From: Botryllus schlosseri
Lineage: Eukaryota
DNA length: 64,000 nucleotides
Direction of reading: 5' to 3'
NCBI GenBank assembly: GCA_051294905.1
Contig: CM119384.1
Location: 24,180,001-24,244,000 of the forward strand
Part shown: in pieces, positions 6,604-45,101 of the stretch
Position numbering within the stretch: position 1 is the stretch's first letter
Layout: every line of letters starts with the position of its first letter
Made by a program: the position numbers and the translations under genes
The notes under the pieces: generated by a model
What the model was told of the DNA's origin: nothing
The model's database searches: none
What the model saw: the letters and a program-made list of their open reading frames with translations, nothing else

Positions 6604-6616
6604 AAGAAACAATAAA

Positions 6617-8115: not shown

Positions 8116-8120
8116 AAATA

Positions 8121-8880: not shown

Positions 8881-8881
8881 T

Positions 8882-11189: not shown

Positions 11190-11419
11190 TCTTGGACTGC
11201 AGGTAAGTCCGTTTTGAACTGCAGGTAAGGCAGTTTGAAATAAGGCAACCACGTATAAAGCACTATGATCTAGGCAAGGCGGTACGGCTTTTTAGCTAAC
11301 TGTCCAGCGCAGATGTAGTTTAAATTATTTATAGCCAATGTATCACACGATACCAGTACTCTACGTTGTAAATCTGAAAGAATATTTCTAGAAGACACCT
11401 GCCACAGCAAGAGATGCTA
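11190..11419 (-). mobile_element. TX-0: 5'-UTR stub of a group-B Tx1/L1 LINE (body absent); left boundary approximate
   Basis: Aligns by eye with the TX-2 5' region (GGCAAG(G/A)CGGTACGGCT, CAGCGCAGAT, GTATCAC..GATACCA, AAGAGATGCTA) and the TX-5 tip (AAATCTGAAAGAATAT..AAGACACCTGCC). Confidence 0.7.
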
Positions 11420-12078
11420 TTTTTTTTACGGCTCCCTGTATCCGCCGGCGTTTGGCAGCCCTCTCTCAGAATAGGGCCCCTCTCGCTCGGGGTCTTTATT
11501 ACACATTTTGTTCATTTTTATGGTTTTTTAATTTTCTAACTCAGGGATTTTTCAACAGTTTATAAACATAATTTTTAACGGTTTCTTCTTGTTTTTTCTC
11601 TTGTTTGCGTATTCTTGTTTCTAAGATGGTGTGTACCTATTCTTGTTTCTAAGATGGTGTGTACCTGAGTACAACCAAATACTCCAATAGTAACGATTTT
11701 TGTTATTTTCCTGTTTCCGTTTACTGGTTAACAGCCAACCGCTGGAAGCGAGTGATTGGGGGGTTCTTTGTTGGCCCCTCCCCTCTTTCCTGAAGGGTTT
11801 TCCATCACTTTTATCCCTTTATCTTTCGTTGGGTTAGTCTAACTATCGTTTGGGACCCCTCTTCGGGGGCTGTTGTATTTTATTCTCATTTTTTTTCTTT
11901 GTTTTGCAAATTCCTGCCAATTTTATCATGTCGCTTCTAAGTATAGCTCTATTTTTTCAACCCATTTGTGTGTTTCGGGGTTCTGTGTTATTTTCTCAAG
12001 TCTCTTTTTCATTTTTTTGAGAGTATTTTTTTCAATGTTTTCACGGTCTACTCTTTCGTTGTTAATATCGAGCGATAT

Positions 12079-15000
12079 TTATGTGTTTATAATTTTCCGC
12101 TTTAGTATAGATGTTAGAATCCAATTTATTTTGTTTTTTTCATTATTATACAAAATGGCGTCATTTGACAGCACAGTTTGCGTTGCACGTTCGATGTTTT
12201 TTATAATCTTTTTTATATACGTGCATTCCACGAGCAGGTGCTTAGCGTTGTCATTTTTCGATCCGCAAAATTTACAGTTTAGTAGCAGTGGTTTATTATA
12301 TTTGGTGTGCGTAATATTTCTTTTCCGCTTTTTCCCACCAAATATGAAGCCTTCGGTCGCAATCCTATAGTTTACTTCCAATTCTTTATTTGTGATGACG
12401 GTTTGCCCCTTGTATTTCGTTTTCCATATTTTTGGCCACTTTACCTCCCCACCGTTTTCTAACCTAATTGTTGTTTTTTTTCTCTCTCTCAATTTTTTGA
12501 TTTCTGTGTATAGTTTCTTGTGTGTTATTCTCCCCATTCTTCTTCCGTGAGTTTCAGCTTGTTTGTTGTGTCTAGTGTGTCTGTCCAGTTTTGGGGGGTC
12601 GAATCTTTGTGTGGTTCCGAGTTGTTATATAATTTTGTGTTGATTGCTTTAAGTTTTGTCCCAAGTTAGTATATGGCATATTTATGCCATATTTATGTTG
12701 GGGTATCGAGTTTTTTAAGGATTGCGACTTTCTCTGCTTGGCAGGTTTGGATTTTCCCAACTACATCCGGGAATCCTATCCCACCGTGGTCTTTGTTTGT
12801 AATAAGCATTTTCCTTGCAATGCACTCCATTTTCTGTGGGTACCACAGAAAATCGAAGTACAGTTTTTCGATCTTTTTGATGTCTTCTTTGAGTGGTGGT
12901 TTTACTCTTGCGTTAAATAATATCTGACTTGATGCGAGGGAATTTAAGATCGTGAGTTTTCCCGTCCATGTTAAGTTTCTGTTCTTGTATGCGTGAAATA
13001 TGCGTTTTAGCTTAGCTATTCTTTCCTTCCAGGTTTCCGTGTTTTGGTTTTTTCCGTAGTATTGTCCAAGTATCTTTATCGTGTCTTTTTTTTGTTTTCT
13101 ATCTCCGGGGTTCGTGTTCGGTGTTTTTTGGGGTTAATGTGTAAAATCTCAGTTTTTCCCGTGTTTAGTTTTTGCCCCGTTGCGCGTTCGAATTTGCCGA
13201 ATTCGTTTAATATGTGCTTCACGTCTTTTTCGCTGGTCAAGTAACAGGTTACATCGTCAGCGTATTGTTGTATTTTTATTTTCGCTTTGCCGATGGTAAA
13301 GGGTTTTATTTTATTATCGTTTTCAATTTTTCTTGACAGGGGGTCACTGCTGATGGCGTAGAGTGCCATACTCAGTGGGCACCCCTGTCTGATTCCGCGC
13401 TCTATTTTGATGTTGTTTGTGAGTGCGCCGTTGATCTGGATCTTACTGGAGGCATTTTTGTAGATCCTCCGTATTTTGGGTATTATATTTGTGGGTAGTT
13501 CGTATTTTCCCAGGATTTTGAAAAGGTATTCGTGATGTAGCCTGTCGCATGCCTTTTCCTGGTCTAGATTCATAACTAGTAGTTCTTTCTGTTTTTCTTG
13601 GGCATAGTCAATCACCGCTTGGGTGTTTCGCAAGACGTCAGTTATTTGCCGATCTTTTATGGCACATTTTTGGGGTAGAGGATTAGGTTTGGTAATATGG
13701 GTTTTAGCCTGTTCGAGATAATTCCGGTTAATATTTTGTAGTCTGTATTTAAAAGCGTTATCGGTCGCCAGTTTTTTAGATTCTTCGGTTCTCCTTTTTT
13801 ATACAATAGTGTTGTTATGCCTATTGTCCAGGATTTGCATAATCCTCCAAACATATATGCGTTATTTATAACTTCAGTCAATTCTTTTTTGAGAATATCC
13901 CAGTAGGTCGCATAATATTCTTTTGAAAGCCCGTCGGAGCCAGGAGTCTTTCTGTTCTCCATGTTTTGGATCACGCATCGAACCTCGGACTCTTCATCTG
14001 GCTCTCTAGTTGCGCTCGTTCTTCTTGGTTTATGTTGAGTACCTCTTGGTTTATGTCGAGTACAGGTACTCATCTTGGAGTCTAGGATCCTCTAGCGCTG
14101 ATTTTCCCCATAAGTTTTTGTAGAATTCTTCCACTGCACGCATGGTTTCGATGTTATTTTGCGTTTCTACTCCCGTTTCATTAACTATAGTTGTAAAGCT
14201 TTTTACTTTCTTTACGTTGCTTCAGTTTGTCGTAGAAGTACTTGGTGGGTTTTTCATTTTCTTCGATATCCTGCATCTTGTGTAGTATGCATTGATATTT
14301 TGTGTTTTCTTCCTCTATTTTTTGGAGTTTTATTTTGCTTCTTCATAGGCATTTTGGTCCCCGCTGGTGTTTTGTAGGGTTTTTGCGATGTTTTCTTGTA
14401 ATGCCCGTTTTTCTTTATTTGCCGCATTTCTTTGGTGCCTTTCGTTTGTGCTTATCAGTCTCCCCATTTCTTTTTTATAGTGGTCCCACCATTCATAGAC
14501 GTCACCAAAGATTGGCTTGTCTTGGATACATCTTTCGTGTAATTTTTCTATTTGTTTACGTAGACTATCGTCCGCGTATTTTCTAGTGTCATTTTTCCAA
14601 GTTCCTTTGCCCCAACTGTTATACCTTACTTTCATTCTTACATGGATCTTTTGCAAGAAGATATGGTCAGAGACGAAGTTTATTTTTTGTTCGCATGACT
14701 TTACTCGACTCGAGAATCTTTCCGATATGTAGATATTGTCTACTCGTCTAGATTGTTTGTGTTTTATTACTGTGTATAGCCTTGTTTTCGGATTCCTCCA
14801 CCTCCAGATGTCTCTGATTTTATAGATATCGGGTGAAGAATTTCCAGATCTTAGCGGCCGGGGTCATAGTAAAGTTTGTGTCATTTTTCACATCTATTCT
14901 ATCGGTGACGATGTTGTAGTCTCCACATATGATGGCGTCATTCGGTTTCTTTTCAATTTCGCTTATAAGTTCTTGATACAGCTCTGTTTGATACTTCCCT

Positions 15001-15398
15001 ACGTCGGGTGGGCCGTAGATGTTATAGAGGTTTGTTTCCTCTCCGGTCTCTTTCTCTACGAAGGTTAGTAGTTGCATTCTGTCTTCTCTAATTATCTTGT
15101 GTGCCAGGTCGTATTGCTTTTCTAGGTCTTTTTTGACTAGAATCGCAGTTCCTCTGTAGTATAACTTCTTCCCTTCTGTTGTGTCTACCCAATTTTGTTT
15201 CAGGTCTATATGCTTCGCATAGTATAGGAAGTTGTTTTGGTTTGCCCATTTCTGGACTCTTTGGGTGTCTACCCTGTGCGTTTCCGTGAAACATACGATG
15301 TTTGTGCGTTTTTCTGTTTTTATTAGACTTTTAATTTTATGCCAGTGGGTAGACATTCCGTTTACGTTCAAAGATATTATGTCTAGATCAGAATCCAT
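12079..15398 (-). pseudogene. TX-1 ORF2 (APE endonuclease + reverse transcriptase + C-terminal Cys motif), fragmented
   Basis: IISLNVNG, CFTETH, YNIYGP, ICGDYN, KTPGSDG, NWRPITLLNTDYKI, GIRQGCPLS, QYADD, CKFC..HLLVEC. Confidence 0.92.
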
Positions 15399-16651
15399 TT
15401 TCCTTGTGGTGGGGGGAGTCTTGTTCGCTTTGTTACACCAATGTTTTTTGGGGTCCAGGAGTTTCCTCCTGGCCCTCTGTTGATGTGTATCTTGTTCGTC
15501 GGGGCTACGGTCTTGCATTGATCGCTTATTTGGCGACGGGGCGCTGAAAAATGCGGCTGCTGTGAAGTTGCTCATGTTTTTATTCCTGTTGCTCGCTCTA
15601 CCCTTATTTTCTCTCCCAGGTCTAGGGGAGTTCTCTGGTCGGTTCACGTTTGGGTTGTTTGATGTGTGGTTCTCTTCCTCATCTGTAGTGACTATCTCTA
15701 ACGACCCTTCGTTCAGGAGATCGTTTGTCGGTGATTTTTCCACAATGGTGTCGTTTGGAGATTGGCTCTCCGACCCTGTGTCGCTAATGATGCCGAAGAG
15801 ATCTATTTGTTCTTGTTCTTTGTCTTCGTCATTTGTTTTTTCTGTATTTGTGTCATTTCTAGGTTTTTGTGCTAATGGGAAAGCTAGTTCGCTATCTTCT
15901 TTTTCTTCGGCTTCCTGTTGTGTTGCTTCTTCAGCCAAGGACGAACTTGGTCTGGGTGGTATCGGTGGCGGCTGCTGCACTGTACAGTTTCCTTTCTATG
16001 GCCTGTTAGCTTGCAAACAAAACAGACCGTCTCATTAGGGCAATCTTTTGCGTTGTGGCCTGCATTGAGGCATTTGAAACATTTTTCGTTTTCAGTGTCC
16101 GTCGGCAGGTATACCTTGCAGGGGGCTTTGCCCAGATATACGAACGGCGGAACCTTGCCTTGTACTTAATTTTCTACGAATAGCTGTCTATAACCATTCT
16201 GGAAGTTTGTTCCTCTGTGGTAGATGGTTCTTATTTCTATTATTGTACCACAGTTGAACCTTTCAAATTTCCGTCTAATTTCATTTTCTTCCACTTCTGT
16301 GGGCACCGCGCGGATGTTTATTATTGCTGTTGGGTAGCGGGGTGGCTGGAAGAAGGCTTTTCTGTGTGGAGTTTCAAGCCCGTCAGTCGCCTGGAATAAG
16401 AATCTTTCTTTCAGTCTTTCTACCTGGGCGTCTTTGTCAAATGTTAAATTGAAGGAGGTGTTCCTTCCTATCTGAAAGATAGATGTTATTCTGCCTGTTT
16501 GCGTTTTTCGTAGCGGGTGTTCAGTTACTGCCGTGATAATGTCTGTTGTTTCTGTGTCAGGCGGCGCTAGTATGTCTAGTGAGCGTGGTCTTTCTCCATA
16601 TGTAATTCGCCTTGTCTGTTCTTCATGTCGCAGCGCATTTGCGTATGCCAT
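15399..16651 (-). pseudogene. TX-1 ORF1 (gag-like RNA-binding protein), internally deleted
   Basis: RPRSLD, INIRAVPTEV..GTI..YHRGT..NGYRQ motifs shared with the other ORF1s; FTAAAFFSAPSPNKR tail. Confidence 0.85.
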
Positions 16652-16914
16652 CTAGCTGTATGCGCGTGTGTGTTTGAAGGTTTCCTCGCTTGGCCCAGTG
16701 TATGGGCTTTGAGGATGCTATGTAGGTGAAGGCTTGCCGTTTCTCTCTGTCTTCTACTGCTGTCTACTGTCTACCGCTACGCTGTTATAAACTGCGTTAT
16801 TTGCAGTGCTATTTGAAGCGCTCTGGAGCGTTTTCAAGGGCGCTTCTAGGCGCTTTGTATTACCGATACTGCAGTTTCGGTTTACGCTGTAGATCGTACG
16901 ATCACCGTCTAGAC

Positions 16915-18719
16915 CAGGGGTGGGCAAACTTTTGGGCTCGCGGGCCGCATTCAACATCCGAATCCATTCGCGGGCCGCACTATATAAAATTGGAATTATA
17001 AACCAAAGCGCAATATTAATTTTTAATTGATTATATAGTGACCCAGTCAACAAAAGTGTGTACATTCAATGCCGAAACAGGCGAAGAAAGTGCAGGAGAG
17101 CAGTGAACGCAACCGTTTTGACACTACAGCGAGGCGGCACCTTTGATGTACAATAACTGATCGCTCTCGAATTCAGAAAATCGATTGTTCTCCTTTCTAT
17201 CGGTCGGCCAGAGAGATTGGTGTTAGCGTAATTAACCAATCCAATTGCGCTTGATTATCACGCGGCTTCACCGTGACGTTTCTTCTGCCTAGCTTTGCCA
17301 GGTTCGTGAGCACTTGAGCGTGGAGTGATTGTGATGTCATAAGTCATCGGATGTTGTTTACCACTGCACACTTAGTTTGAATTATATTCCGTCTATACTG
17401 GCGAATTGTATTTCCGAGATTATAGCTAGATCAAACTTGTACCGGAAAGGAGATCTCTGTATCTCGACTGAAATCAATATGTGGTTTTATGCATTTTATA
17501 TGGCTGTCTCTCTGTATTTGACCGGTGTTTTGTATGTATATGCTCGTGGTGGATTTTATTATAACTAAAACTATAATGAAAATGTATTGTCAAATTGTGA
17601 TGTCTTACAACATAAGGGTCAGTATGTATGCCAGAAAGCAACAATGATTCAGGTAGCGATAGGGCTAATAGCGTTTGTAAGCTGCAGTAGCGAGAGGGTT
17701 AATGGACGACAACAACGGGTTAATGAGTCTGCGGCAGAAGTGCGAGAATTGTTTCTTTTGAAGCATCATTTTGACATCGAATGCGTATTATACGCCTGGC
17801 GATCGCTTCCCATTTTGTTGACTGGGGAGGACATAGAGATGATATATGTGCTTATTTAAAACAAGCCAAACATTGCTTTGATGATTTCGTGCACGCGTCA
17901 GAAACATATAGTGGCGAGATTTCATAGGCTGGCGGACCTCAATAACCAATTTTTCAGAACTATAGAGATGAAAGTCGGTTGGCGCGATTCTTAGAACAGG
18001 ATTGAAATTTAAATCTGTGAGCAGCGATCTCCTCATAGATTTAATAATTCCACTTTTGGTTAAGTTCCAGGACACACCATGCTGACACCATGTTATCTTC
18101 AAACACGCTTCTACTATATGTAGATAAAATATAAATACCCCAATTCTACGCATACAGACGACGAATCTACCTTAGACACGCCCGAGTCGTTTTTTATGCG
18201 CACAATACTGAAATAATTAAAATTTGAGTGGCCAATCTGAAATCCCACCCGTAATCTAAATTATGTCAATCTCGTTGCAGCTATCCCGCTGTGATATTAA
18301 GTATTTACCTTAGATCAGTGGTTCTCAAACTTTTTACCCCCCCCCCCCCCTTATGATGGTGAAAGATTTCGCTCCCCCTTATCGTCATATCACAAAACGC
18401 AACCAGGATGCTAGCAAACCTGACGGGTAGTTTGATGGCAGGGCAAGTTGCGACTGTGGATGAGAGATTTTTGAATATGTAATTCAGATTAAATACAGAG
18501 CAATAACTACGAATTGGATGTAAATCGCGAAAAATTTTGACCGTTGGGCACAGCTTCGCGCCCCTTTTCAGATGATTTCACGCCCTGTCCCTGCATTAAT
18601 TTGATTTTTAATACGCATTTTATCAATATTTTTAAAAAGTTTTTTCAGACTCTCGCGGGCCGCACAGAACGGTGTTGCGGGCCGCATGCGGCCCGCGGGC
18701 CGTAGTTTGCCCACCCCTG
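16915..18719. mobile_element. Non-autonomous hAT (Charlie/Buster-type) element, 1805 bp
   Basis: Perfect 16-bp TIR CAGGGGTGGGCAAACT; 8-bp TSD GTCTAGAC at 16907-16914 and 18720-18727; empty sites in paralogous UTRs near 32271 and 60518. Confidence 0.95.
18316..18335. mobile_element. Orphan hAT terminus nested in the MITE
   Basis: CAGTGGTTCTCAAACTTTTT preceded by CCTTAGAT; no partner end found. Confidence 0.45.
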
Positions 18720-18769
18720 GTCTAGACAGTGTCGTATCGCGTTCGCAATCAACTGAGGTTAGTAGGCCA

Positions 18770-19000
18770 GACAGTCTCTCGGCTTCTCAGACGAGAAGCG
18801 CGAGAGAGGAGAAAGGAAAAGTAGAGACTTGACTCGAGAGAGAGTCAAGTCTCTAAAGAAAAGACTCGACCGAGAATTGACTCACAAAGACGAGTCAATT
18901 CTCGGAGAGGTAGATAAAGACTCCTTGAGACCTGACTCACGAAGACGAGTCAAGTCTCAGGAGGGAGGAGGTCAGAGTCTGAAGGAGACCCGAAGCAGTA
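18770..19000. repeat. GACTC/GAGTC inverted-repeat array in group-A 5' UTRs (also about 32310-32560 and 60565-60790)
   Basis: 13-bp stem AGAGACTTGACTC / GAGTCAAGTCTCT with 6-nt loop (18823-18854, 60620-60651; variant 32363-32394) followed by further GACTC..GAGTC hairpins. Confidence 0.8.
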
Positions 19001-19403
19001 ATCCGACGATTTTTTTTGTAGGCTGCCGCAGCGAGCCTTAGAGTAGTCGAAAAGCATAAAATATAAAATATAAATATAAACAACGAAAAGACAATATATA
19101 TTTAGAGTCTTCCGTTCAAGATGTCACACAAAGTTTCGTCATTTATTCACATTGCATGAAATATTTCACACGAGATTCACATGAAAAATTGCATGAAATA
19201 CACATGAAATGCACATGAAATTTTCCTTGCTTTCCGTTGCAGCTTCTTTTCCGCTCTTTATCTTTGATTGTCGATACTTACTCTTTCATTCTCCGTTGGT
19301 CTTTCTCTTCGTTCCTTCTTGCGTTGTCAGGGTTTGTTTTCATCTTCGATGAAAGCAATTTCATTTTTGAAGATGATTTCTTCTATTGGTGAGTGAAAAT
19401 GAG

Positions 19404-22400
19404 TCAGTCTTTTTTTATTTTTCTCAATATCTTTCTGGTCGTCGTTTTGAGAGTTATTTTCGTGTTTGATAGTTTTACGTTATCTTTATCTAGGCCTAGT
19501 TTTGTTTGTATGACTTGTCTTTTTAGAATACTTAGTATTGTCCAATCGTTCCTGTTTAGGTTATCGTTATAAAATATTTGGTCTAATCCCAGCTTTTTCT
19601 GTTTGAATAAAAGTCTAAAATTACTTAACAACTCCTTGTCAAATGGACACTTCAGAAAGATGTGTTCTAGGTTATCATATCTGTTGTCACAAAATTTGCA
19701 GTTTGTGATGTTATTATTGTGAGAATCAATCCTCAACAGGTTTAACCTTCTCTTTTCCTCACTAAAGAAGTAGCCCTTGCAAGCCGTTCTTATGTTAATT
19801 ACTCTCTCTTCATTTTTTATTCTATTTACGTCTTCGTTTGCCATTTGCACTTTTTTCCAATTAACCATTACTCCATTACTTAGTCTAATTAGTGTTGTAG
19901 TTGCTTTTTTTTCTTTAAGTTTATTATGTATGTCCTTGTGTGTCGCTATTTTCCATTGGTCATCGTCCCATTCTATTTCTTTTACAGATTCCAAGATATC
20001 TCTCCATTCTGCGCTCATTCTGTTGCGCTCATTCTGTCCCTGTGTGGGATTGAATTGGAGTACAGTTTTTCATTAATGCTTTGGACTTTTGTGCCCAATA
20101 CATACAATGCTTCGTGATGCCAGAATTCACTGGGTGAGTCTATGTTTTTGATTATCTTGTATTTCTCTATTTTGCTCGCTTTAAGCTTACTTTCTACGCA
20201 TGGTATTTTTAGTTTGTGCATTAACTTTCTACGCATGGTATTTTTAGTTTGTGCATTATTTGTTCTGAGATTAAATGTGTTCGCCTAATTGGTTCGACTT
20301 TCTCTGGGTGCCAAATGAATTTGAAGAATATACTTTCTATTTCTTTGATATATTTTTTGGAGCGTCGATTATTCTCGCATTATAGACTAATTTGGATGTT
20401 GCGAGACTGTTAAGTATTATTGCTTTGCCAAACCATGTTAATTCTCTATCTTTGTACGCAATTGTGATTTTTCGAAGTTGTTCAATTCTCTTCTTCCAAG
20501 TTTTTTCTATATAACATTGGCCGAAAGATTGTCCTAAAATTTCTAATGATGTTTTGAGAATATTTTTGTATTTACTATTCGCGATTCTATTCGGATTCGT
20601 ACTTAGGATTTCTGATTTATCTTTGTTGAGGCGTTGCCCTGTGGCTTTGCCGAAATTCTCGAATTCTTCTATGACTTTGTCTATAGAGTGAATGTCTTTG
20701 ACTATAGCAGTCACATCATCAGCGTACTGCTGGATCTTGACTTCGCTGCTACCTAGTCTGATACCTTTGATTTCCTCATTTTTAACTATTCTTCTTGCGA
20801 GAGGATCTATTGTCAATGCATAAAGGCACATGCTTAATGGACATCCTTGTCGCAGTCCCCTGTCTACTTGTATCCTCTTCGTCATTCCACCATTTACTTC
20901 TACTTTACTATACGAGTTGTCGTATAGGTTTGCTATTAGTTTCAAGTTTCCTAATAGTTTTCGGTAACCCGTATTTCTCTAGAACTTGGTATAAGTACGC
21001 ATGAGGGACCTTGTCAAATGCCTTTTCCAAGTCCAAATTGAGAATGAAAAGGTCATTCTTTTTGTAGAGAGCAGTGTCTATCGCGGCTTTGACATTTCTT
21101 AACGCGTCGGATATCTGCCTATCTTTGATGCCACATTTTTGCGTATTTAGTACAATCGAATTGGTTACATTTTTAGGCGGTTAGCTAATATAGCTGTGAG
21201 AATTTTATGGTCTACATTTAATAAAGTTATGGGTCTCCAATTTTTGATATCTTGTGCATTTCCTTTGTATAACAATTTTACAATGCCCTTGTGCCACGAT
21301 TTACAGGTCGCTCCAAAGAATAAGGCATTATTGTAAAGCTCTAAAAGTTCCTGTTTCAAGACTGGCAAGGCCAGTACTTGATGTAGAACTCTTTAGTGAG
21401 TCCATCGCTTCCTGGAGTTTTGCCTGAGCTCATTTTTTTAAAGTACTTAGTATTTCTTCTTGAGTAACACTCATTTCTAAGCAATCTTGATCTTCTTTCG
21501 AAATATTGACCTCGTTTAGATCTTCTAGGTACATTTCTTTAAGATCGTAGTCCAAGTTTTTCTCTGCATCCCAAAGGTTTTTATAGAAATTTTGGATAAT
21601 CCTTTTGACCTCTTCAGGGCGTTCCTCAGTTTGTCCTTTCTCATCTATGATACTATGAATTTGTTTTTGTCTGTTTCTAGATTTCAGCCTGTCAAAGAAG
21701 TACTTTGTAGGCTTTTCACAGTTATCTTTGTCAACCAGCTTTGCTGTTTTGCAGAGGAAATTAAGTTTTTTACTCTCTTCTCTTTTCAGTTCTTTATGTA
21801 ATCTGATCTTTTCATAGCTATCCTGTTCTTTATTTATATCTCTTATTTTTGCCCTGATTAAGGCTTCTTTGTTTCTCTGGGGATTGTAGTATTGTGTTAC
21901 TCTCCTTATTTCAGTTTTTAAAACTGATTTAAGGTCATCTCACCATTGTGTGATTGATTCGTAATTGCCCTTATTTTTCTTCATCACATCAATTGTAGTT
22001 TTAATGTGATCATCGATCAAGGGCGAGTCTAGAACATTGATGTTGCATTTCCACGAACCTTTTCCATAATTGATTCGCGATTTATCCGATATTGTCAACT
22101 CCATCATATAGATGTGGTCAGATATCGGATTGTAGCTGTATTTACATTTAGAAACATCTTTTGCGACATCGTCTGTGGCGTATATGTTATCTATACGTCG
22201 TTCTTGTTTTCCTGTAATCTTGGTGTATATTTCCTTTTTAGAATTTCTCCAACGATTTACATCCTGATAAGAGTGATTTTCGATGAAATTTTTCCAAGTC
22301 TTTGCTGCTGGTGACAGATTGTATTTAGTCTTCACCTTACAGTCTTTGTCATTATTAATCAAATTAAAGTCTCCACAAATAACTGTTCTATTGGAAGTAT

Positions 22401-22858
22401 CATAGAGCGTCTCAGAAAGGTTTTTATAGAAGTCTGTCTGATATTTCCCAGGATTAGGAGGTGCATACACGTTCCATATCTCTAGGACATTTTCTTGACT
22501 TTTTAGCAAGATTGATTGAACTCTATGCTCTACTGTAGCGTTCCCAGTTATGCTCTACTGTAACGTTCCCAGTTATTTTGTATTTGTTTTCCATTTCAGA
22601 CTTAATCAGTATTAATGTTCCTAAATAGTATAGACGTTTGTGTTTTTCTCTGTTCACCCAGATTTCTTGTTTGTCCAGGCAGTTTTTGTATAGAATGTAT
22701 TTGTTATTTTTACACCAATCTTCAATTTTAGCTGTATTTATTTTATGAGATTCCTGAATGCATATTACATCGCTATTTTGTTTTTTAATTAGATTAGTAA
22801 GATTATTCCAGTTCCGGTCTATTCCGTTTGCATTTAGCGATGTTATTTTGATAGCCAT
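19404..22858 (-). pseudogene. TX-2 ORF2 (EN-RT), fragmented
   Basis: ITSLNANG, CIQESH, WNVYAP, ICGDFN, RRIDNIY, NWRPITLLNVDHKI, GLRQGCPLS, QYADD, CKFC..HIFLKC. Confidence 0.92.
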
Positions 22859-23172
22859 TATCGTTTTTTGGAGTGGCTTCTGCCCGGTTTGCTTTTCCTG
22901 CTTTTCTTTTTGGTCTTGCTTTGAGTTAGTGTGCTGCAATCCTGAGCCTGTTCCTCATCTATTTGCTCCCCTTCTGAGGAGACTGTCAGATCTGAATTTT
23001 CTGAGTCGTCAGTGAGCGTTTTCGCGCATGTCACCTTAGACTTTATTTCACCTTAGACTTTATTTTTGGGCTGTCCTCTTCGGAATCAGAACCCTGGGAC
23101 GAAATCTGTAAGTCCTCTGCTAGTTCATTTCGATTGTCAGTCTAATTTTGTTCATCTGTGACTTCAGTTTCT

Positions 23173-25008
23173 GGGTAATTTCCTGCCAAATGAGCAAATT
23201 TATTTTCAGATGAGCACCAAGGTCAATGGATGGCTACAAAATTTGGCACATTGATTCTTCTGTCATTATCATGAAAAAATCAAAAAATATTTTTCTCAAA
23301 TTCAACCTGATGACAAAGTTACACTCCTCACAAAACCATGCTTTTTGCATGTCACGCTCCAGTGATTTTCATCAAATCTGCAGTGAAACAGCAATATATT
23401 TTGCTGTGACAGTTAAATAACGCTGAAATTTGGTGGGAATCTCATTTGAAGTCTATATCATGTTACTGAGGCTTATTAGTAGGAGCTCCTCATTTTCCGA
23501 CAGCTTAAATTGAATGTGGTACATCCGAAAAGGGGAAAAAAAATTTACGGTCATTTTCATGAATTCGTGATTTTCAATATGCCTTCTACTTTGCTACAAA
23601 ATCTGAACAATTAATTTTCAAAATCTGAACAATTAATTTTCACGTTATCTGGTGGAAATGTGCCAATTTCTGATTACTGTGAATTTTTGGTATTTTCGAT
23701 TATGATGTCGTAAACCAAACAAGCTTAACAAACGGAATTCGCATAAAATGGTTATGTAGGCCTACTGTAAATGAATACATGCGATCCAATCCAAATTTCA
23801 CATGCCATGTGGTCTGGATTTACAGTTTCTGTATCATGAACCACACAAACTGAAAAACCACCAAAATTAATAGAAAATGTTCTCGTAATATACTTGAATG
23901 AAAATGCAATAGTTTTTCATACAAAAGCATCTTAATTGCCCAATCCATGCAAAATCTTCATTTTTTTTAAATGTTGTCTTCATATACTTTCTACTGCCTG
24001 CCACTATAGCATTTGAATGCATGTCAATGCAAAGAAGTAGGGTACCGGTATGTGAGAAAACAGGTCATAACAGATATATCTTTTCTTGCTGGCCAATGAA
24101 ATGAACCTGATGGACCGTCTGAATGCAGGAATTTGATTTTGGCATCACAATGCTCCTTATTTACGTCCAACACCATTCCAATTCACCATTTCCTATCATA
24201 TAAGCACACTTATCAAGCTGGTTTTCACGTTAAAATTCAATTTGTGTCAAATTTCTTCATCTTTCATCACCTTTGTAACTATGACATTCAAAATCAGTTA
24301 TTTATCTACTGCAATTGAGACAATGAAGTCACTCACTCACTGAAATTGGACTATAGTTACTCAGTCACAGCTATACTGTAATTCCCAGGGCTAGTTAACT
24401 TCATTCAGCCACCTTCAACATAGGATGCATTGTGACATCACAATGAACAATGACCTAAAGGTCTGAATTCCATTGTTATTATAATCCATTATTCCTTTGG
24501 AGTTTTTTACTGGTGTAGTTGGAAATTAATGGATTGAATCTTTATTAAATGTAAGACAATATATTCAAGATCACTACTTCAGAATCTTGGTTTCTAAAAT
24601 TTTTCCCCTTTTTATTTATGGGAGTTTGAACTTTCGGCACCAAAACGAGCAGTAGGAGTCTCATGTGACATTTTTTTGTATGATAACATACTCTGAAATG
24701 TTTGGGCCATCAATTTAAGAATTCCTGGAGACCTGTAGCATCATGTCCCCAAATTCCAGCCACATTAACGGCTTTTTACCTTCAAAATAATGACATTGAA
24801 AAAATAATTGACAATGTTCAATGAAGCGTGACAAGGAAAATGTTCAAACTTTGAAGCCTCATAACTTGGTACTTTTTTAGAATTTTCTAAAAAAAAATTG
24901 AAAAATTGGATTTGGCATATCTAAAGCTATATCAATCAGTGTGCCAAATTTCATATAAATTCTCCAACCTTGGTGCAACCCCCTTGTTGATTTGGCAAGA
25001 AATTACCC
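23173..25008. mobile_element. Non-autonomous cut-and-paste transposon with GGG..CCC ends and 4-bp TSD (Sola2-like, tentative), inserted in TX-2 ORF1
   Basis: TIR GGGTAATTTC(C/T)TGCCAAAT (18/19) plus subterminal GCACCAAGG and AAATTTGGCACA; TSD TTCT at 23169-23172 and 25009-25012; no coding remnant seen. Confidence 0.8.
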
Positions 25009-25761
25009 TTCTTCATTTACGGTAATATCTGCTATTTCACTGCAATCGACTTCCTTGGTTAAATTCGGGAACTCCTCGTTCCTTATAGGACAGTCGATCA
25101 TGCTGTGCTTTTGTGAATCACAGTATTGGCAGCGTTTCGCCGTGCATTTTGACGCGATATGCCCGGTCTGCCCACATTCGTAACATTTTCTGGTATTATT
25201 TTTAGGCGCAGTTGGCAAGAAGATTTTACACCTGGCTCCGTCTACCGTGATGAATTGAGGAAGGATACCTTTCACGCAAACTTCGTAGACCAGATGCCTG
25301 AAGCCATTTTCAAAATTTGTGTTTTTATGGTACCCTCTTGTGATTTTCAATAGGGTTCCTGCGTTCCAGGTTTGTATTGCGTTCGCTAGCGATTCGCAAG
25401 TTGTTTCTGTTGGCACGGCTCTAACGCTTATGTATGTAAGCGGTGCTCTTGGCTTTCTTATTTCATATCTTTTACCTTGGTGAGTCACTTCCTGAATGTT
25501 TTGAACCAGGTCATTACGTTGGCTGTGTTCTTGCATTGTAATGCTGAAAACGTTCAGCGATATTTGAAACATAGATTGTATCTCATTTTTCCATTCTTTC
25601 AGATCCTTCTGCAAGTATATCAGGTCCAGAACCTCTTCCGGACTGATCTGATCTTGTGCGATCAGATCGAATGAACGCGGTCTGTTCCCATGGGAGATGT
25701 ATTTATTCATTATTCTGTATTCCTGTTTAAGCACACAGCTTATTCTTTGCACTTCAAGCAC
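25009..25761 (-). pseudogene. TX-2 ORF1 N-terminal part with two CCHC zinc knuckles
   Basis: RPRSFD, ISVRAVPTE, NGFRH, CYECGQTGHIASKC, CQYCDSQKHSMIDC. Confidence 0.9.
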
Positions 25762-27210
25762 TTAGCTCTATTTGATTTCGAGCACACAGCTCTTATTCTT
25801 GTAATCGGTCCGGTCTAATACCGGTTTTATTCGCCTGAAGAAGCGATTTCTTCTGTCGGCAGGCTTTGACAGAGGCTCCAACGCGCAAAGCCGTTGATTG
25901 TTCGATTTCACTGTCGGAACAATGCGAGTTCAGTTTTGTTATTGTCGCGTCAGGTTGCGACAATGGGTTGGTGTTGCCGTTAATAATCGCGATATTTTGG
26001 GTGTTAAATCGGCTGTATTTGTTCCGTAAAGGATGTTTTTGTTAAAATTATAGTTGATTCGTCTTAGGTATTTGCCAAACCAACTAATGATACCTTTTTA
26101 GTCGTGATACCTTTTCAGTCAAGTAAATCCAAATTTTCAAAATGCAATACCGGTGTAGCTAATCGCTATTCCAAGTCACCGGCTGCGCTGTCGCGTTTTC
26201 AATCTGTTACGGCAGTAAACAGCACCGTGTCCAAACTGGGCTGGTAATCTAAGCTCTATCTTTAGCTTTGTGAATAACGCGCACAATCGTTGGTGAGTAT
26301 CGGTATTCCTACACGCGGCGTTTATGGGTATTGTGCTGTGACTGCCTTTGGCTTTTGTATGATTCTCAGTTTTTATTGAATGCTAATTCCAGTCCTAATT
26401 TGTTATCAAAACTTTGTGTTTCAGATGTTCCTGATGATTGCTGGGTGTGGCAACCACAGCGTTTCAGCGGCCGCCTACAACACTGTGTGGAAACTCTGGG
26501 AAAGCTTCGCTAAAGAGAGCCTCGCTATTGCCAAGGCTAAACACACGCTGCGCCGACTCTGGTGAAAGTCTGTGAAGACTTCCTCTCCGTGTGGTTAGCT
26601 GTTTGTGATTGGGTTTAGTATCAGTTAAATCTTTCCTGCACAAACTGTGGAATACAGTCTATGTGCTGCGTTTTGTGGTACTGTATCCTCACGTGTGCTC
26701 TGAGTTTAGAATACCGCGTGAAAGTACCAGTTGTGTGTGTTTTATGCTTGTTTTCAGCAGGCTAGCGTACGGCAACCGCGTTATATTTTATATTACAGCA
26801 GGTACAGCAACCACGTTTAGCTCTAGGTACTGCAGATACGGCAACCACGTGTAGATCTAATGCACGGCGGGTACTGGAACCTCGTGTTATTCTAGGTACG
26901 GCGGCAAGACGGTACGGCTACTAGAGTTAAGCTGCACAGCGCAGATTTAACTAAAATTAGTTAAAATTAGTTTGCTAGCAACGTATCACAGCGATACCAA
27001 GTCTTTGAATCTGGAAAACAGGTTAGTTCTCGCGCGCGGCGAAAGAGATGCTAACTTATAACAACCAATTACTCCAACGACGATGATGGAATAGAAGACG
27101 AAGAATAAAGAAGCCTAGGTATAAAGGTAACTTAGGTACTCTGAGTAATTTACTGCTAATTACGGTAGTTGCCACAGCGGCTCTGGATCACCTGAAAATA
27201 TCTGGATCAC

Positions 27211-27238
27211 CTGAAAATAGCCGTTAGTCGATACTCAC
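27211..27238 (-). promoter_or_regulatory. Micro-intron-like motif at LINE 5' tips (also 11374-11398, 27011-27033, 32678-32702, 51498-51520, 60955-60981)
   Basis: GTGAGTATCGACTAACGGCTATTTTCAG: donor, CTAAC branch and pyrimidine-CAG acceptor within 28 nt; function is inferred, not shown. Confidence 0.5.
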
Positions 27239-27250
27239 GTGTGGTTGCAA

Positions 27251-27688
27251 TTTTTTTTTTTAATTTTTTTTTAGGGGTAACCTGGTGGAACCGCAGGAAA
27301 CCACCACCCCGTTACGCTTGTGGCAGCCGCATGGCATTACACCATGTGACTATTGCCACAAGCGCCTTTACAGGTCACTCTTGGGTAGAAGGTACCCGAG
27401 AGCTCCCTTAAGGTTGCTTCTTTGTTGCCACTTTTTTACCTTCATCAGTTTCTCTGCGTTTTAGGTGCAAATGGCTGTCACAAGCAGGCCTTGGCTGGGG
27501 GCGTCTGCGGAGGCTTGTCCCGCCGCCACCATACTTGTGACTGGGATACTGCCCCGACAAGCGGTTTCAGATCCCGGGTTGGAATATGAAGGCCAAGGGC
27601 CATACTCTTCCAGGTGTGAGAGTGATTGGAAGTATCGGTTGGACCACGAGGGTTTCGCATCGGCCAGCGCCCAGTAAGCCGATGCTTA
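27251..27688 (-). mobile_element. S1: about 416-nt non-coding, poly(A)-tailed, highly structured non-autonomous retroelement
   Basis: Near-identical ends with S3 (5' TAAGCATCGG, 3' GGTTACCCCT-An); many stems; no ORF homology. Confidence 0.75.
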
Positions 27689-27798
27689 TTTTTTTTTAGG
27701 GGTAACCTGGAGGAACCGCAGTAAACCTCCACCCCGTGGTATTTCACCAAGTTACTTTCCCACAAGCGCCTTTATAGGTCACTCTTGGGTCCAAAGTA
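27689..27798 (-). mobile_element. S2: about 100-nt shortened variant of the S element
   Basis: Same 3' end; 10-bp TSD CCGATGCTTA at 27679-27688 and 27799-27808. Confidence 0.75.
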
Positions 27799-27983
27799 CC
27801 GATGCTTATTTTTTTTTATACGGCTCCCCGTAACCGACGGCGTTTGGCAGCCCTCTCCAAGAATAGGGCTGCATCCCGCTCGGAGTCTTGATTACACGTT
27901 TTATTTAATTTTTATTTTTGATTTTTTCTAACTTAAAGGTTTTTAAACTGGTACATATGAACATAACTTTCAACGGTTTCTTC

Positions 27984-30900
27984 TTATGTCAGGATGTGCT
28001 TTGCGTCATCATTATCCGCGTTACAAAATTTGCACTTTAGGTCTAGCGCTTTTCCAGTTGTTGTGTGGGTTATATTTCGGCTGCGTTTTTTATTGCCGAA
28101 AATGTACGCATTGTATGCAGTTTTGTAATTTATGATAAGCTCTTGATTCGTTATAGTTTTTTGGGCTTGATATTGTGTCTGGTTGATCTTCTTCCAGTTT
28201 ATATCTTTCCCTTCTTCCGTTTTTATGATTGGTCTATTTTCTTTTATAGTTTTGATTGCTTTATATAAGCATATATGTGTAGCTTCCTGCCACTCCTCTT
28301 CATCGAATTCTATTTTCTTACTAAGTTCGATATTGTCAATCCATTTTCGGGGTACAGGGTATTTGTGTGGTTCTGTATTTTTATACAATCGCTCGTTAAT
28401 TTGTTTTATTCTTGTCCCGATTTCGTATATCGCATATTGATGCCATATTTCTTGCGGTTTTTCTATTTTCTTCAGTTTTCTATTTTCTTCAGTTCGAGTA
28501 TTTTCTCTAATTCGCAGGCTTTTATTTTTGATTCAACATCGGGTATTTCAAATCCGCCTCGTTCTTTCTCCGCTATTAATGTTTTCCTCGAAATTGATTC
28601 CATTTTTTCCGGATTCCAGATAAAATTAAAATACATCTTTTCTATTTGTTTTTGATATTTTTTTGGCATCTCAATTACTCTGGCATTATATATGATGAGG
28701 CTGGACGCCATGGAATTGAGAATTGTTTTTTCCCGACCCAGGATAGTCGTCTATGTTTATAGGCGTTGAGGGTCCGCTTTATTTTCATAATGCGCATATT
28801 CCACGTTTCTTTTTCTTGGTTTTCGCCATATATTTGGCCGAGTATTTTTATGCTTGGTTTTATTAGGTGTTTGTATTGGAAGCTGTTGCTTAAGATACCG
28901 CGTCTTGGTGGGATGTGTAGGATTTCGGTTTTATTGGCGTTCAATTTTTGGCCTGTTGCTCTTGCATATTGTTCAAATTCTTGGAATATTATTTCGACGT
29001 CTTTTTCTTGGGTAAGATAGCAGGTCAAGTCATCAGCGTACTGCTGTAGCCCGATCGTGCTCCTCCCTATTCTAAAGGCCTGGATATTTCGGTTGTTTTC
29101 AATTTTTCGGGCTAGGGGGTCGCTGCAGATGGCGTATAAGGCCATACTTAACGGACACCCCTGCCTTATTCCTCTTTTTAGATGTATTTTGCCTGTAAGG
29201 GCTCCGTTAACTAGTATTCTGCTATTTGATGTGCTGTACAGTTTTTTGATTAATTTAATGATGTTCCCAGGGAGGCGGTATCCCTCCAATGTTTTATACA
29301 TGTATTCGTGATTTATTCTGTCAAAGGCTTTTTCTTGGTCAAAGTTGACCAAGAATTGCTGTTTGCCTCGTTCTTTTGCATAATCCACTGCGGCTTGGGT
29401 GTTTCTGAGTACATCAGTAATCTTTCTACCTTTTATGCCACATTTTTGTGTATTATGTATCACGTCAGGTAATGTTTCTTTCAATCTGGCTGATATTATT
29501 GCCGTTAGGATTTTATAGTCCGTGTTAAGTACTGTAATGGGCCTCCAGTTATTGAGGTTGGCGGGGTTCCCTTTCTTGTATATTATCGTGGATATCCCGT
29601 CCGCCCACGTCTCGCATATGCCTCCAAATATGTACGCGTTGTTAATTACGTCTTGGAGGTCTTTTTTTATCACGTTCCAGAAGGTGGCATAAAACTCTTT
29701 GGGTAGGCCATCCGACCCGGGAGTTTTGCCACCTTCCAAAGTCTTTTGTTTGCTCTTGGGATATTTCCATCCCTTCCACTTGTTCAAGGTATTTTTCCTG
29801 GAGGCCTGTGTTAATGTATTCGGTTTTATTCCACAGTTTTGTGTAATAATCTTCTACCGTTTTAATGACCTCTTCTTTGATGGTTATTTCCGTTTTATCA
29901 AGTACTTTTCTCTCTCTTCTTTGCTCTATTTTTTGGAAAAAGTATTTAGTGGGTCGTTCGCCCTCTTCTAGATCTTTTATTTTGTAGAGCTGGGCTTGGT
30001 ATCTAATCTCGTCGTCTTCGAGCCTTTTTATGTGTTTAATGGCTTCGAAGGGGTCCTCGTCCGTGTTTTGGTCGTTTTGGATTCGACCAATTTCTTCTTT
30101 CAGTGCTTTTATTTTTTTGTTTGTTTCGACCCTTTTGGTCCAGCTGTGATGTTTTAGCAGCTTTTTGATTTCTCTTTTAAGGTAATCCCACCATTCGTAT
30201 ACATCATTGTACATTGGTTTTCTTTCTGTACATTTTAGGTGGACCTCTTCTATTTCTTTGTAGAGCTCTTCATTGGGGTAATGCCTGGGGTCGCTTTTCC
30301 AGGTTCCGTTACCCCATTTTATGTTGTTTGCCGGCTCTGCTATTGTTATTTTTTGAAGAAAGATGTGGTCCGAGATGGTGTTAAGTTGGTATGTTATTCT
30401 TTTGACTCTCGTTAGGAGTCTTTCTGAGACGTAGATCCTGTCTATGCGCCTCGATTGTCTTATCTTCATGATCGTATATAGTTTTTTTGTTGGGTTTCGC
30501 CAACGCCATGCGTCTCTGATTTTATAAATTTCCGTAAAGGACTTCCAGATTTTGGCCGCGGGTGTAATCTGGCCGCGGGTGTTAACTTAAAGTTCTGGAT
30601 GTTTTTCGAGTCTATTTTGGCGGTGACTATGTTAAAGTCACCGCAGACTATTGCGGTGTCTGGGTGTTTTTCAAGTTCTGATATTATTTCATTATAGAAT
30701 GTTGTTTGGTGTCTTCCAACATCGCTTGGTCCGTATATGTTATATACAGAGGTGTTTTCGTTCGTTTCTTTATGCGTAAGTTTTAGCGCTTGGGCCCTAT
30801 GTTCTTTTATAATCTGGTGATCAATTCCGAATTTGGTTTGTATTTCTTTTTTAATAAGTATACTCGTTCCTCTATAATAGAGTTTTTTCCCTTCTTCTGT

Positions 30901-37663: not shown

Positions 37664-40600
37664 CGTGCGACCTTTTTTTTTTTTTTCGGGTCCCGCGGGC
37701 ATCCACAAATTTATTACACCAAGAATTTCAATATATGTAAGTTTCAATATAATCTATAAACTGAAAATAAGGAAAAAGCATTTCTTCTTTAATCCCATCA
37801 TGTCATCATCATGTCATCGTGTCATCGGTTCACGGTCTGCGGCTCCATCATCGGTCAGGGGTCCTCGTCATCCAGGTATCATCCGTGGCGTCGGCGTCTC
37901 CTTTTCCTCAGATTTCACTGCTCCGGCATTCTTTGTTGTGAGTCGCGTACATATTATTTCTTCTTTCTTCAAAAGGCCGACAAAGAAGTGGTCAGCCTTG
38001 TCTTTGGGTTTCCAAGTTGGTATATCGTGCTTTCACTTCATTTCCAATTGAACACAGCTGTTTTTGAGCGTGCTCTATGGTTCAATTGTTCTTCTTGACT
38101 TCTTTGTTTCCGTAATTGTCTTTTCCTCTTTCGAAAGAAACGAAGTCACTGTTTTGCATTGTCTACCGACTTGTTCGACAATGGTCACAATCGGTCTAAG
38201 AAAATCCCTGTTTTGTTCTTTTTATGGTCAAAAATCCATATATTTTCAAGTTTTGAACCGAAATTTGAGTTAGTATTGTGCTCTTCAGTCAAAATAATTC
38301 GCGTAATGTGTATATGCAAGACAAAGGTTAAGAGCGAAAAGGTTTTTTTTCTTGTTGCCATTACCGGTACTTTGCCTAAGCGCGGGCGTCTAATTTCCAC
38401 TGTTTTCTGTTTACTGTCTCCTTTCTATCGCCCATTACTTTGCTATTTTTTGTTTCAGATCGATATATCACGTCTTTTCTTCTATTTCCATATGAAAAAC
38501 AGCTTTTTCTGAGCGTTTTCTATGGTCTTATTGTCTTCCGTTTCTTGATTGTTCTCATAATTGTTTTGCTATCTTCGAAACAATCGAAATCGTTGTTTCG
38601 CATTGTCTACCAGCTTCTTCAACAATGGTCGCGATCGGTCTATGGAATCACTGTTTTTGGTCTTTTTAAGGTCTAAATAACTATATATTTTTGTTTTTAA
38701 AGCCGAAATTGAGTTAATATTGTGTCCCTCGGTCAAATTCCATCCGCATAATGGGTTTTGAAAGGATATGGTTGTGAGCAAAAAATCTCTTTTCTTGCTG
38801 TCACTACCGGTACTTTGCCTAATACAAAGTGTATTTTGTTTCGTTTGATTACGGGTTACAGGTTCTCCTCATATATGAACGCGAGTTCATTTCTGAGGGC
38901 CTGGTCCTCCGTTGAGTTATTAAGCGTACTGATTCTTCTCATCAGTTTTCTTGCTGTCTATTTTTCTTGCTGTCTTTTTTGTCAAATCCTTAACTGCTTC
39001 TTCAACTTTAATCCAACTCTGCTTATTTTTGTCTAATGCCAATTTGTTCTTGATTATTTCTTTCTTTATTAGGCTTATTATTGCCCAATCTTCTGATTCT
39101 TGTAGATTTTGATTGTACAGAACCGAATCTTTGTTCATTACTTTTGATTTTATTATTCTTGCAAAATTACTATACAGGTTCTTTGCAAGTTTACAATGAA
39201 TCAGTAAGTGTTCTATGTTGTCTTTCTGTTCGCCACAAAATCTACATTTTATGGATTCCATCGGCTGTGACCCAACATTCAGGATGTTTAGCCTTCTCCT
39301 GTCTTCACCGAAGAAGTATCCATTCGATGCTGTTCTTATATTGATAACTCTTTCCTCATTTGTTAGGTGGGTTTTGCAACCTCTAATTTCCGATACTTTG
39401 TCTAATTTCGTCCATGTTCCACTTTCGAGGAGTACGTCTGTTGGTATATCTTTCTGTTTTTTGATCTCTGTGTAGATGTCTTTGTGAGTTGCTTCAGCCC
39501 ATCTCTGGTCTGTCCAATCTAATTTGTTAACTATTTTCAAAATTTCTCTCCATTCCTCTTAGTTGTGTTTAACCTGTGTGGAGAAGAGTTATTATATAAC
39601 TGTGGGTTCACTTCCCTTAATCTGGTGCCCAGGGTGTACATGGCTTCATGATGCCAAAATTCTTTGGGTTGGCTGATATTTTTCAGGATTTTGAATTTTT
39701 CAGCCAGCCCTGCTTCTACCTTGCTTTGGATGCAAGGTACGTTTATTTTCTTTATAGCGTCACTACATATCATTTTCCTCCGATTTATTGGTTCCATTTT
39801 TTCGGGGTTCCATATAAATCGGAAGAAAATGCTGTTAATCTTTTTAATTGCCTTCTTTGGCATATGAATGATCCTTGCGTTGTAGAAGATCTTGGTTATT
39901 GCAAGGCTATATAAGATGGTTGCCTTGCCAAACCACGTGAGCTTTCTATGTCTATATGCCATGGTGATTTTTTTTAATCTGGTTTATTCTTTTTTCCTAG
40001 GTCTCATTTTTATAATTTTGGCCGAATTTTTGTCCCAATATTTCTGTAGATTGTTTTATTAAATTTTTATAGTTTTCGTTCTTTATAATATTTTGTTTGA
40101 AGGATAATATTTGAGTTTTGGATTTGTTCAGTGTCTGGCCTGTTGCTTTTCCGAACATCTCAAATTCACGAAATATTAGGTCCATTGAGTATTCATCTTT
40201 CACTAGTGCTGTTAAATCATCAGCGTATTGCTGTAGTTTTATTTCTTCTGTTCCAATTTTAATTCCAGTTATATTTTTGTTTTTGTGTATTCTTCTCGCG
40301 ACTGGGTCAGTCGTCATGGCGTAGAGGGCCATGCAGCCCTGTCCAAGCCCTCTACCCATCTTTATTTGTCCTGTCAGGCCACTTATTGCCTGAACTTGAC
40401 TATAAGATCCTTCATATAGGTTTCTTATCAGTGTTGACATGTTGGTGGGAATGTCATACGCTTTGAGTATTCTAAATAAGTATCCATGATTTACCTTGTC
40501 GAATGCTTTCTCCTGGTCGTAAGAGATTACGAGTAGGTCTTGATTTTTGTAAAGAGCGTGATCAATTGCTGCTTTTATGTTTCTGATCGCATCCGTGATC

Positions 40601-43600: not shown

Positions 43601-45101
43601 TTATTACCCATTCTGGTATCTTTAGCTCTTTGAGATCTATAAATCTCATCATCAAATCTTCTTTTAGTGATTGCAAATGACACGAATAGCAGTCTAAGTC
43701 AGGCTCTGTCACATGTGAATCGTCGATTTGGTTTTCTTGCAAGGCTTTCAATTTAGGAAATTGAGTCAAATCATGCCTCAGTAAACAAGCCCGGTAAAAA
43801 TCCAATTTGCTAATGAATGCCATAACAATACCCTTTGCTTTGATGAGACACATCTTGGTACCTTGCAATTTCCTGTTGACCTCATTTAACTTGCTGAAAA
43901 TTTCAGACAAATACGCGACGTCTGCCCTTCTGCTCTTCAAATCGGAGCTAGCTGTCTGATCCAACATTTTAAGGTTGATGAAATCGATAACAGAATCGAA
44001 AAGGTCATAGAAGCGTTCGAGACATCTGCCTTTTGAGAGCCACCGGACTTCTGTATGAAGCAAGAGCCGCTCAAATTCTTCGTCATTTTCATGACAAAGT
44101 TTGCGAAATATGCGGTCATTCAATGAATGAGCTTTGATCTTGTTCACGGCTCTAACAACAACCGGCAGGGTCTCATGTAATCTGTCGCTGAGGTGCTTTG
44201 CTGCTAGATGTTGTCTGTGAATGACGCAGTGTATCGTGAATATGTCAGGAACTTCTCTTTTCAAATGTGCAATGAATCCTCGATGCCGTCCAACCATTGA
44301 TGGTGCGCCATCTGTTGCACACGCAAGGATATTCGACATGGGGATATGTTTCTGCTTGAAAAAATTTTCGACTGTCTCATAAATCGTCGAGCCTTTGGTG
44401 TCGACCTCTAATTGCTCCGCAAACAGAAACTCTTCTACAATTTGAAAAGTGGAGCTAACATAGCGCACATAGCCCATAAGCAAAGCTTGGTTATCGCGTA
44501 GCGTTGTCTCGTCAAGTTGCAGGGAAAATTGCGTTGTTTTGAGTTCGCTACAGAGTTTATTTTCAACGTCATTTGCCATTTCATCTATTCGGGAAGACAC
44601 AGTGCTATTACTCAATGGAATTGAACTTGTAACATCTTTTTGATAGCTCATCATGGTACTGATGATTTCTTTAACAGCTGGTATAATGAGACGCTCACCA
44701 ATGGTGTGCGATAATCCACATTTTGCAATGAGCATTGATATTTTGTAAGATACAATAAGTCCTTGCTCAACTTCCTTCCTGGATGACTTTATTAGACACC
44801 CAACAGTAAGACGTTTCTCAAATTTTTCTTTCAGAATCCGAAAATATCCGATATCCTTGTTGGCTTTTTCTGGATGCCTATTCTTCAAATGATCCATCAT
44901 TCTGGAAGGCTTCATACCTTCATTCGTAAACGTTTTCTCGCATATTAAACACATCGGTAATTGTTCATTGTCCACAGATGGAATTACACCATATTTGAGT
45001 AATTCTTTGGGCCGATAGCAGACGATATAGATAATATTAGGATCTTGGTTGTTTTCACACCCTATTTAGCGTCCACTTGCAACGTAATAATTTTATTTAT
45101 T

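Follow-up and report, generated by a model that had tools for sequence, protein, structure and literature searches.

The 64-kb window (the whole stretch of DNA analysed here) carries diverged LINEs stacked head-to-tail on its minus strand, from ~11.4 kb to the window end. These LINEs encode an APE endonuclease, a reverse transcriptase and a zinc-knuckle ORF1, their ORF2 groups with L1/Tx1-type proteins, and each of them ends in a run of A8-A16. Three of the LINEs begin with what we refer to as an A-type head, in which 8-12 variable nt are followed by GTRAGTAT, (C)TAACGGCTATTT, CAGG and GCCGCTGTGGCA. The window also contains three copies of a short element, S, which are all located on the minus strand, are each poly(A)-tailed and lie where the preliminary description of this DNA had placed them. 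A search using nhmmer with all filters off revealed no further copies or fragments of S in the 64 kb. The copies and the LINE ends that adjoin them are listed below.

27053-27250, minus strand: A-type LINE head downstream of S1, landing site, reading TTGCAACCACAC and then, across the junction, GTGAGTATCGACTAACGGCTATTTTCAGG...GCCGCTGTGGCA
27251-27272, minus strand: A-tail of S1 (A9-TT-A11), adjoining the exact 5' end of the A-type LINE head
27273-27688, minus strand: body of S1, full-length, 416 nt, beginning with TAAGCATCGGC and ending with CCACCAGGTTACCCCT, GC 55%
27689-27697, minus strand: A-tail of S2 (A9), with the S1 5' tip immediately after it
27698-27808, minus strand: body of S2, an internally deleted copy with a terminal hairpin of the GGAGG/CCUCC type
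27809-27917, minus strand: final segment of the LINE located 5' of S2, reading ...ACGGGGAGCCGTAT and then an A9 tail
60890-60989, minus strand: A-type LINE head that lies downstream of S3 and shares the conserved motifs of the head next to S1
60990-61009, minus strand: A-tail of S3 (A20), adjoining the A-type LINE head, with TATCACGC on one side of the junction and GTAAGTATGAACTAACGGC on the other
61010-61408, minus strand: body of S3, full-length, 399 nt, nearer to the family majority than S1 at several sites
61409-61518, minus strand: final segment of the LINE located 5' of S3, reading ...GGGATCGCTGCGGCGACCG and then an A10 tail, with AATAAA 27 nt upstream

The S1 tail meets the A-type head at 27250, the S3 tail does so at 60989, and S2 lies directly 5' of S1. 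Since S2 and then S1 are both placed just 5' of the same head, the tandem pair can be explained without S itself serving as a target. The two full-length copies are 88% identical (blastn) and differ by 33 substitutions, a 10-nt indel in a loop and indels in an A-rich linker. In S2, the first 10 nt (TAAGCATCGG) are fused at a TCGG microhomology to approximately the last 100 nt, and an additional deletion of 21 nt has taken away the long stem's 3' arm; across the shared part, S2 is 75% identical to S1. All three copies have the same 5' tip and an identical 3' end, after which come tails of 9-22 nt made up of A-runs. The LINE bodies beside S1 and S3 are only 67-77% alike, versus 88% for S1 and S3. 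The S copies are thus more similar to each other than their neighbours are, which identifies them as separate, later arrivals rather than parts of a duplicated block and shows that the S insertions are independent and later than the LINEs.

The minus strand is the RNA strand of S. From 5' to 3', the element consists of a GC-rich structured half, an A-rich variable linker, a half with three hairpins and an encoded A-tail. Its 5' end, UAAGCAUC, is fixed and lies within an 8-bp hairpin; TAAG is all that could be read there as part of a leader, and no leader exon with an intron is present. In the consensus fold, the 5' hairpin is followed by a long core hairpin rich in GC and then, in the 3' half, by three hairpins, one of which adjoins the tail. 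The features of S1 are as follows.

27657-27685, minus strand: 5' hairpin GCAUCGGC/GCCGAUGC, 8 bp, with a loop of 13 nt in S1 and 3 nt in S3
27477-27541, minus strand: GC-rich core hairpin GUCACAAGUAUGG...CCUGCUUGUGAC (pairs 149-213), which differs between the two full-length copies at a single bulge base only
27413-27463, minus strand: A-rich variable linker that separates the two halves of the element and in which S1 and S3 differ by indels
27314-27365, minus strand: long stem of the 3' module, GCGCUUGUGGCA/UGCCACAAGCGU (pairs 325-377), whose inner hairpin holds the change of A-U to G-C (345-359)
27274-27310, minus strand: 3'-terminal hairpin GGGGU-GGUGG...CCACC...ACCCC (pairs 92-128 and 99-116), immediately before the A-tail, with U-A changed to A-U in S2

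Compared with dinucleotide shuffles, the minus-strand fold has a z of -4.48 for S1 and -5.06 for S3, and the plus strand of S1 has a z of -2.77. No AAUAAA signal is present in S, and TTTT runs are confined to the plus strand. A 100-aa ORF of S3 has zero relatives among 5.8 billion proteins. The tails, the fold z and this ORF without relatives bear out the initial view of S as a non-coding, structured, A-tailed retro-element of ~400 nt. The possibility that S is a dimer of two related halves was rejected (z ≤ 2.2).

Do the differences between the copies reflect selection on an RNA fold? The stem changes quoted in the preliminary description were all found in the sequence: GGUGG/CCACC has become GGAGG/CCUCC in the terminal hairpin of S2 (pair 99-116), AUGG/CCAU has become GUGG/CCAC in S3 (pair 345-359), the 5' hairpin retains its pairing in S3 with one G.U and the shorter loop, and the stem GCUUGUGGC/GCCACAAGC has a U.G in S3 (pair 332-370). 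Altogether, the three copies display three compensatory pairs (U-A to A-U in S2; A-U to G-C and C-G to A-U between S1 and S3), together with several G.U shifts. Because the consensus fold is fitted to the same sequences, an independent permutation test was used, in which the S3 substitutions were placed on the MFE structure of S1 alone and compared with 2,000 random placements. Nine pairs were broken versus 13.1 in the random placements (P 0.047), and the reciprocal test, with S1 substitutions on the S3 structure, gave a P of 0.051. For the plus strand, P was 0.047 on the S1 structure and 0.48 on the S3 structure. Compensatory base changes had been put forward as evidence for S as a structured RNA; three events in three copies, with a P of ~0.05 and no strand favoured, do not sustain that argument. 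The covariation in S, drawn from three copies only, is no more than suggestive and too slight a basis for claiming a selected RNA fold. The repetition and the folding of S exceed chance, which cannot be said of the covariation.

Three public runs supplied contigs and a fourth supplied raw RNA reads, all four runs being of the same organism, and these sequences were aligned to positions 27000-28000 at a likeness of at least 85%. In X1, the summed contig depth in S was 700-11,500, versus 15.3 on a perfectly matching flank contig of 1,415 nt; in X2, it was 4,000-15,000, versus 88 on a perfectly matching flank contig of 2,141 nt. The depth of S is thus 50-750 times that of the single-copy flank, which suggests a family of roughly 100-700 copy-equivalents, a figure that derives from summed contig depth and is not a true copy count. 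A total of 834 X1 pieces were aligned, 208 of them at an identity of at least 99% and 283 at 95-99%, which indicates that the family was recently active. The deepest part is the core hairpin (bins 27476-27543; 9,500-11,500 in X1 and 10,000-15,000 in X2). Over the linker region (27408-27475), the X1 depth drops to 140-540, which means that other copies fail the 85% alignment there and that the linker is variable across the family. The terminal hairpin of the GGAGG type, as in S2, has a depth of 4,200-4,500 in X1, and the GGUGG type, as in S1, a depth of ~700; with the S2-type hairpin approximately six times deeper, both variants head abundant subfamilies.

The sequences that lie past the S-type tail are heterogeneous (seven contigs, consensus agreement 0.47), which speaks for S copies being dispersed rather than confined to the LINE array. 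S had originally been portrayed as riding the array; as an account of its habitat this is unsupported, given that the family numbers a few hundred copies and that their flanks are heterogeneous. What is new here is that S is shown to be a genome repeat family and not a private passenger of the array. Three copies at two loci in 64 kb nevertheless represent an enrichment, which fits an insertion machinery common to S and the LINEs. Exact-pattern scans of public metagenome and viral contigs revealed no more copies. The raw RNA run yielded only 23 matching reads among ~12.9 million sampled, from a library of unspecified type in which short RNAs are readily lost; these reads came from both strands, all continued into unlike sequence and look like S copies embedded within other transcripts.

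Searches for known RNAs in S were consistently negative. Rfam returned nothing for the whole window at gathering thresholds, and on S at E ≤ 10 it gave three chance-level matches and no ribozyme, tRNA, 5S, SRP or snRNA. ARAGORN detected no tRNA in S, and inspection by eye revealed no convincing A or B boxes, although a very diverged head could escape such an inspection. S had been described as having no tRNA, 5S or 7SL head and no similarity to the LINE 3' ends of this DNA, and both statements stand, the former on the Rfam (E ≤ 10) and ARAGORN results and the latter on blastn with word size 7, nhmmer --max and local alignments. When the heads and tails of S were compared with those of all LINEs in the window, seven tails among them, z did not exceed 1.5 against shuffled controls, and S had no similarity to L001, a 5.5-kb full-length LINE contig and ORF2 relative. 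A longer LINE ending in the S 3' stem-loop, which the preliminary description had proposed to look for, was found neither among the window LINEs nor in L001.

The 5' tip of S had also been likened to the tips of the group-B LINEs, and the whole element had been thought to mimic the junction target. The former holds insofar as AGCATC is common to both, and nothing further aligns. The latter is unsupported: AGCATC is all that S has in common with the group-B tips (head local alignment, z < 0.2), and since S is inserted immediately 5' of A-type LINE heads, its layout can be explained without mimicry.

How does S compare with known classes of short retroelements? In the strict sense of SINEBase, a SINE is a repeated, non-coding element of ~80-600 nt with a head that derives from a Pol III gene and contains an internal promoter, with a tail recognised by a LINE, and with transcription by Pol III. 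S is 399-416 nt long, its ORF has no relatives, and its depth is 50-750 times that of the flank. Its 3' end is a simple A-tail and not a LINE-derived tail, and no Pol III-derived head with an internal promoter was found by ARAGORN, Rfam or eye, which places S outside this strict definition. On Pol III transcription, the lack of TTTT in the minus strand bears only indirectly. Nor is S the truncated 3' UTR of one of the LINEs compared, as it shows no continuity with the seven window LINE tails or L001. The name SINE-like, which S had been given from the beginning, is appropriate.

The closest parallels are the A-tailed SINEs of L1-group LINEs (primate Alu, rodent B1 and ID), which are likewise short, non-coding and multicopy, form subfamilies, and have an encoded A-tail without a polyadenylation signal and without an internal T4 run. 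As in Alu-type elements, two folded halves are split by an A-rich linker, and nothing is common with the LINE 3' end, which fits recognition of the A-tail in trans. Unlike Alu, B1 and ID, S has no 7SL-, tRNA- or 5S-derived head and no A or B boxes, and its halves are mutually unrelated. A second comparison is offered by NARTc and RIME, the non-autonomous partners of L1Tc and ingi, which are site-specific or array-forming LINEs. S resembles such partners in being a small element at the landing junction of the autonomous LINEs themselves; however, they share clear 5' or 3' sequence with the LINE, whereas S shares at most AGCATC, and S also appears dispersed outside arrays. APE-type LINEs of the Tx1 clade are a recognised target-specific group (PMC4640811), and target-specific LINEs are paired with SINEs that have snRNA-derived heads (Kojima 2015, cited in PMC4640811).

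Taken together, these data make it probable that S is a short (~400 nt), non-coding, A-tailed family of non-autonomous retroposons, SINE-like in the broad sense, that comprises ~100-700 copy-equivalents and is moved in trans by LINEs. The A-tailed S RNA would be taken up in trans by the reverse transcriptase and endonuclease of the surrounding poly(A)-tailed L1/Tx1 LINEs and inserted by target-primed reverse transcription. The three insertions (S2, then S1 and, separately, S3) lie precisely where the A-tail of a resident element meets the 5' tip of an A-type LINE head, and this is also the junction at which the LINEs stack. The machinery may reach this junction through a nuclease that recognises the head, with GTRAGTAT located 8-12 nt inside the heads as a candidate site, or through an L1-like preference for the T-runs opposite resident A-tails. 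The hairpins of S would most plausibly contribute to RNA stability, or the terminal hairpin might recruit the reverse transcriptase. We infer the LINE partner from the context and the A-tails, and no LINE examined shares the S 3' end. TSDs are unreadable within the array, which counts against the retroposon reading. A more specific version of this reading, possible if unlikely, is that the SINE-like S has a head of new origin (not tRNA, 5S, 7SL, snRNA or LINE) and that its structured RNA, notably the terminal hairpin, is specifically recruited by site-specific L1/Tx1 LINEs and delivered to their 5' heads, which would make S a dedicated hitch-hiker of self-stacking LINEs in a chordate. The pairing of the terminal hairpin has been kept through a double change between two abundant subfamilies.

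Several other origins have to be weighed against a LINE-mobilised SINE-like family. S could descend from an autonomous LINE outside the window through an internal deletion that left the UTRs alone, in which case its two halves would correspond to the 5' and 3' UTRs of that LINE. The 5' tip TA(A)GCATC resembles the group-B tips TAGCATC and TATCATC, the terminal-loop hexamer CUGCGG also occurs in two LINE tails (61419 and 19018), and S2 shows that end-preserving internal deletions occur. However, these common motifs are just 6-7 nt long and were chosen post hoc, the local alignments to window LINE heads and tails remained at z ≤ 1.5, and blastn at word size 7, nhmmer --max and the comparison with L001 were all empty; we consider such a derivation improbable. 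The LINE machinery is also able to copy cellular RNAs such as human Y, 7SK and U6 into retropseudogenes, and the S copies might have arisen in this manner from one structured cellular ncRNA of ~400 nt without an Rfam model in tunicates. The strong folding of one strand, the fixed 5' and 3' ends, the lack of a LINE-derived segment and the lack of a recognised internal promoter would all agree with retropseudogenes, but no Rfam family was matched at E ≤ 10, the RNA reads are very few and all chimeric, and the two abundant subfamilies, distinguished by a compensatory pair, and the variable linker point to evolving master copies. Retropseudogenes of this kind are quite improbable.

Another candidate is a retrocopy of a trans-spliced RNA. 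The final bases of the ascidian leader (...GAATAAG) would then survive as the A(n)TAAG that precedes CATCGGC, and A-microhomology would link them to the A-tail upstream. The spliced leader of Ciona is ATTCTATTTGAATAAG (PMC7986045, PMC1488885), and A(n)TAAG followed by CATC is found in all three S copies. Nevertheless, the match amounts to only 4 nt beyond the A-run, and the leader is that of Ciona and may not be that of the host. No longer leader match exists at any junction in the window, none of the matches is better than chance, and S has no AAUAAA and thus no hint of a 3' end of the Pol II mRNA type, which leaves this origin very improbable. Finally, S had been called ribozyme-like, and one may suppose that it bears a ribozyme that cleaves itself, or some other RNA with a catalytic or regulatory role, and that the stems are kept for this function. 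The RNA is indeed highly structured and shows the three compensatory pair changes, and the CUGAUGA and GAAA boxes in the linker of S1 (27413-27463) look like the core of a hammerhead. These boxes are likely a false lead for motif scans: CUGAUGA lies within the variable linker and is absent in S3, which reads CUUUGA. No hammerhead, HDV-like, twister, pistol or hatchet ribozyme was matched in Rfam at E ≤ 10, an HDV-like fold cutting at the 5' tip would need nested P2/P3 helices, which the 5' hairpin of S3 cannot accommodate in a loop of 3 nt, and S2 is devoid of one arm of the long stem. A function of this type would be extremely improbable, and the label ribozyme-like is unsupported.

S is an ordinary kind of interspersed repeat, whose modest interest comes from the unplaced head and the co-location with stacking LINEs. 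It provides a small, young and traceable marker of L1/Tx1 landing sites in a sea squirt. If its head is truly without Pol III-gene ancestry, S joins a small group of SINE-like families whose promoter type is unknown; failing that, it is a commonplace interspersed repeat. It should be masked as a repeat rather than regarded as a possible functional RNA or ribozyme.

Several other features of the array and its surroundings were observed. The A-type heads at 27238, 32702 and 60981 (minus strand) contain elements resembling a splice donor, a branch point and a U-run similar to an Sm site, as in the intron of a spliced-leader RNA, and what precedes them is the 8-12 variable nt rather than the Ciona leader. 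At 19018-27052 (minus strand), a LINE whose tip is of group B (TAGCATCTCT...) is nested in the 5' UTR of an A-type LINE, ~200 nt from its start, so not every insertion in the array took place at a junction of an A-tail and a 5' tip. The segments that flank this nested LINE (27053-27250 and 11428-19009) have TCGTCG on both sides, which may be a TSD, and 24 extra nt (TTGGAGTAATTGGTTGTTATAAGT) that end in the leader-like TTATAAG precede its tip. The LINE 3' ends fall into two classes, which suggests two ways to form a 3' end: those at 61419-61450 and 37687-37720 (minus strand) combine a short hairpin of GC pairs, either CGCUGCGGC or CCCGCGGG, with an AATAAA located ~25 nt upstream of the tail, and those at 27818, 51555, 11428 and 32729 (minus strand) end in ACGG-RGAG-CCGUAU and have no polyadenylation signal. 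On the plus strand, a run of ORFs at 70-10156 includes an integrase core domain (5297-6088), with no Pfam match for the ORFs at 70-1407 and 9113-10156, and probably represents a retroelement of the LTR type at the border of the LINE array. One array LINE is interrupted at 43350-50075 (minus strand) by zf-BED and hAT dimerisation ORFs, which belong to a hAT DNA transposon.
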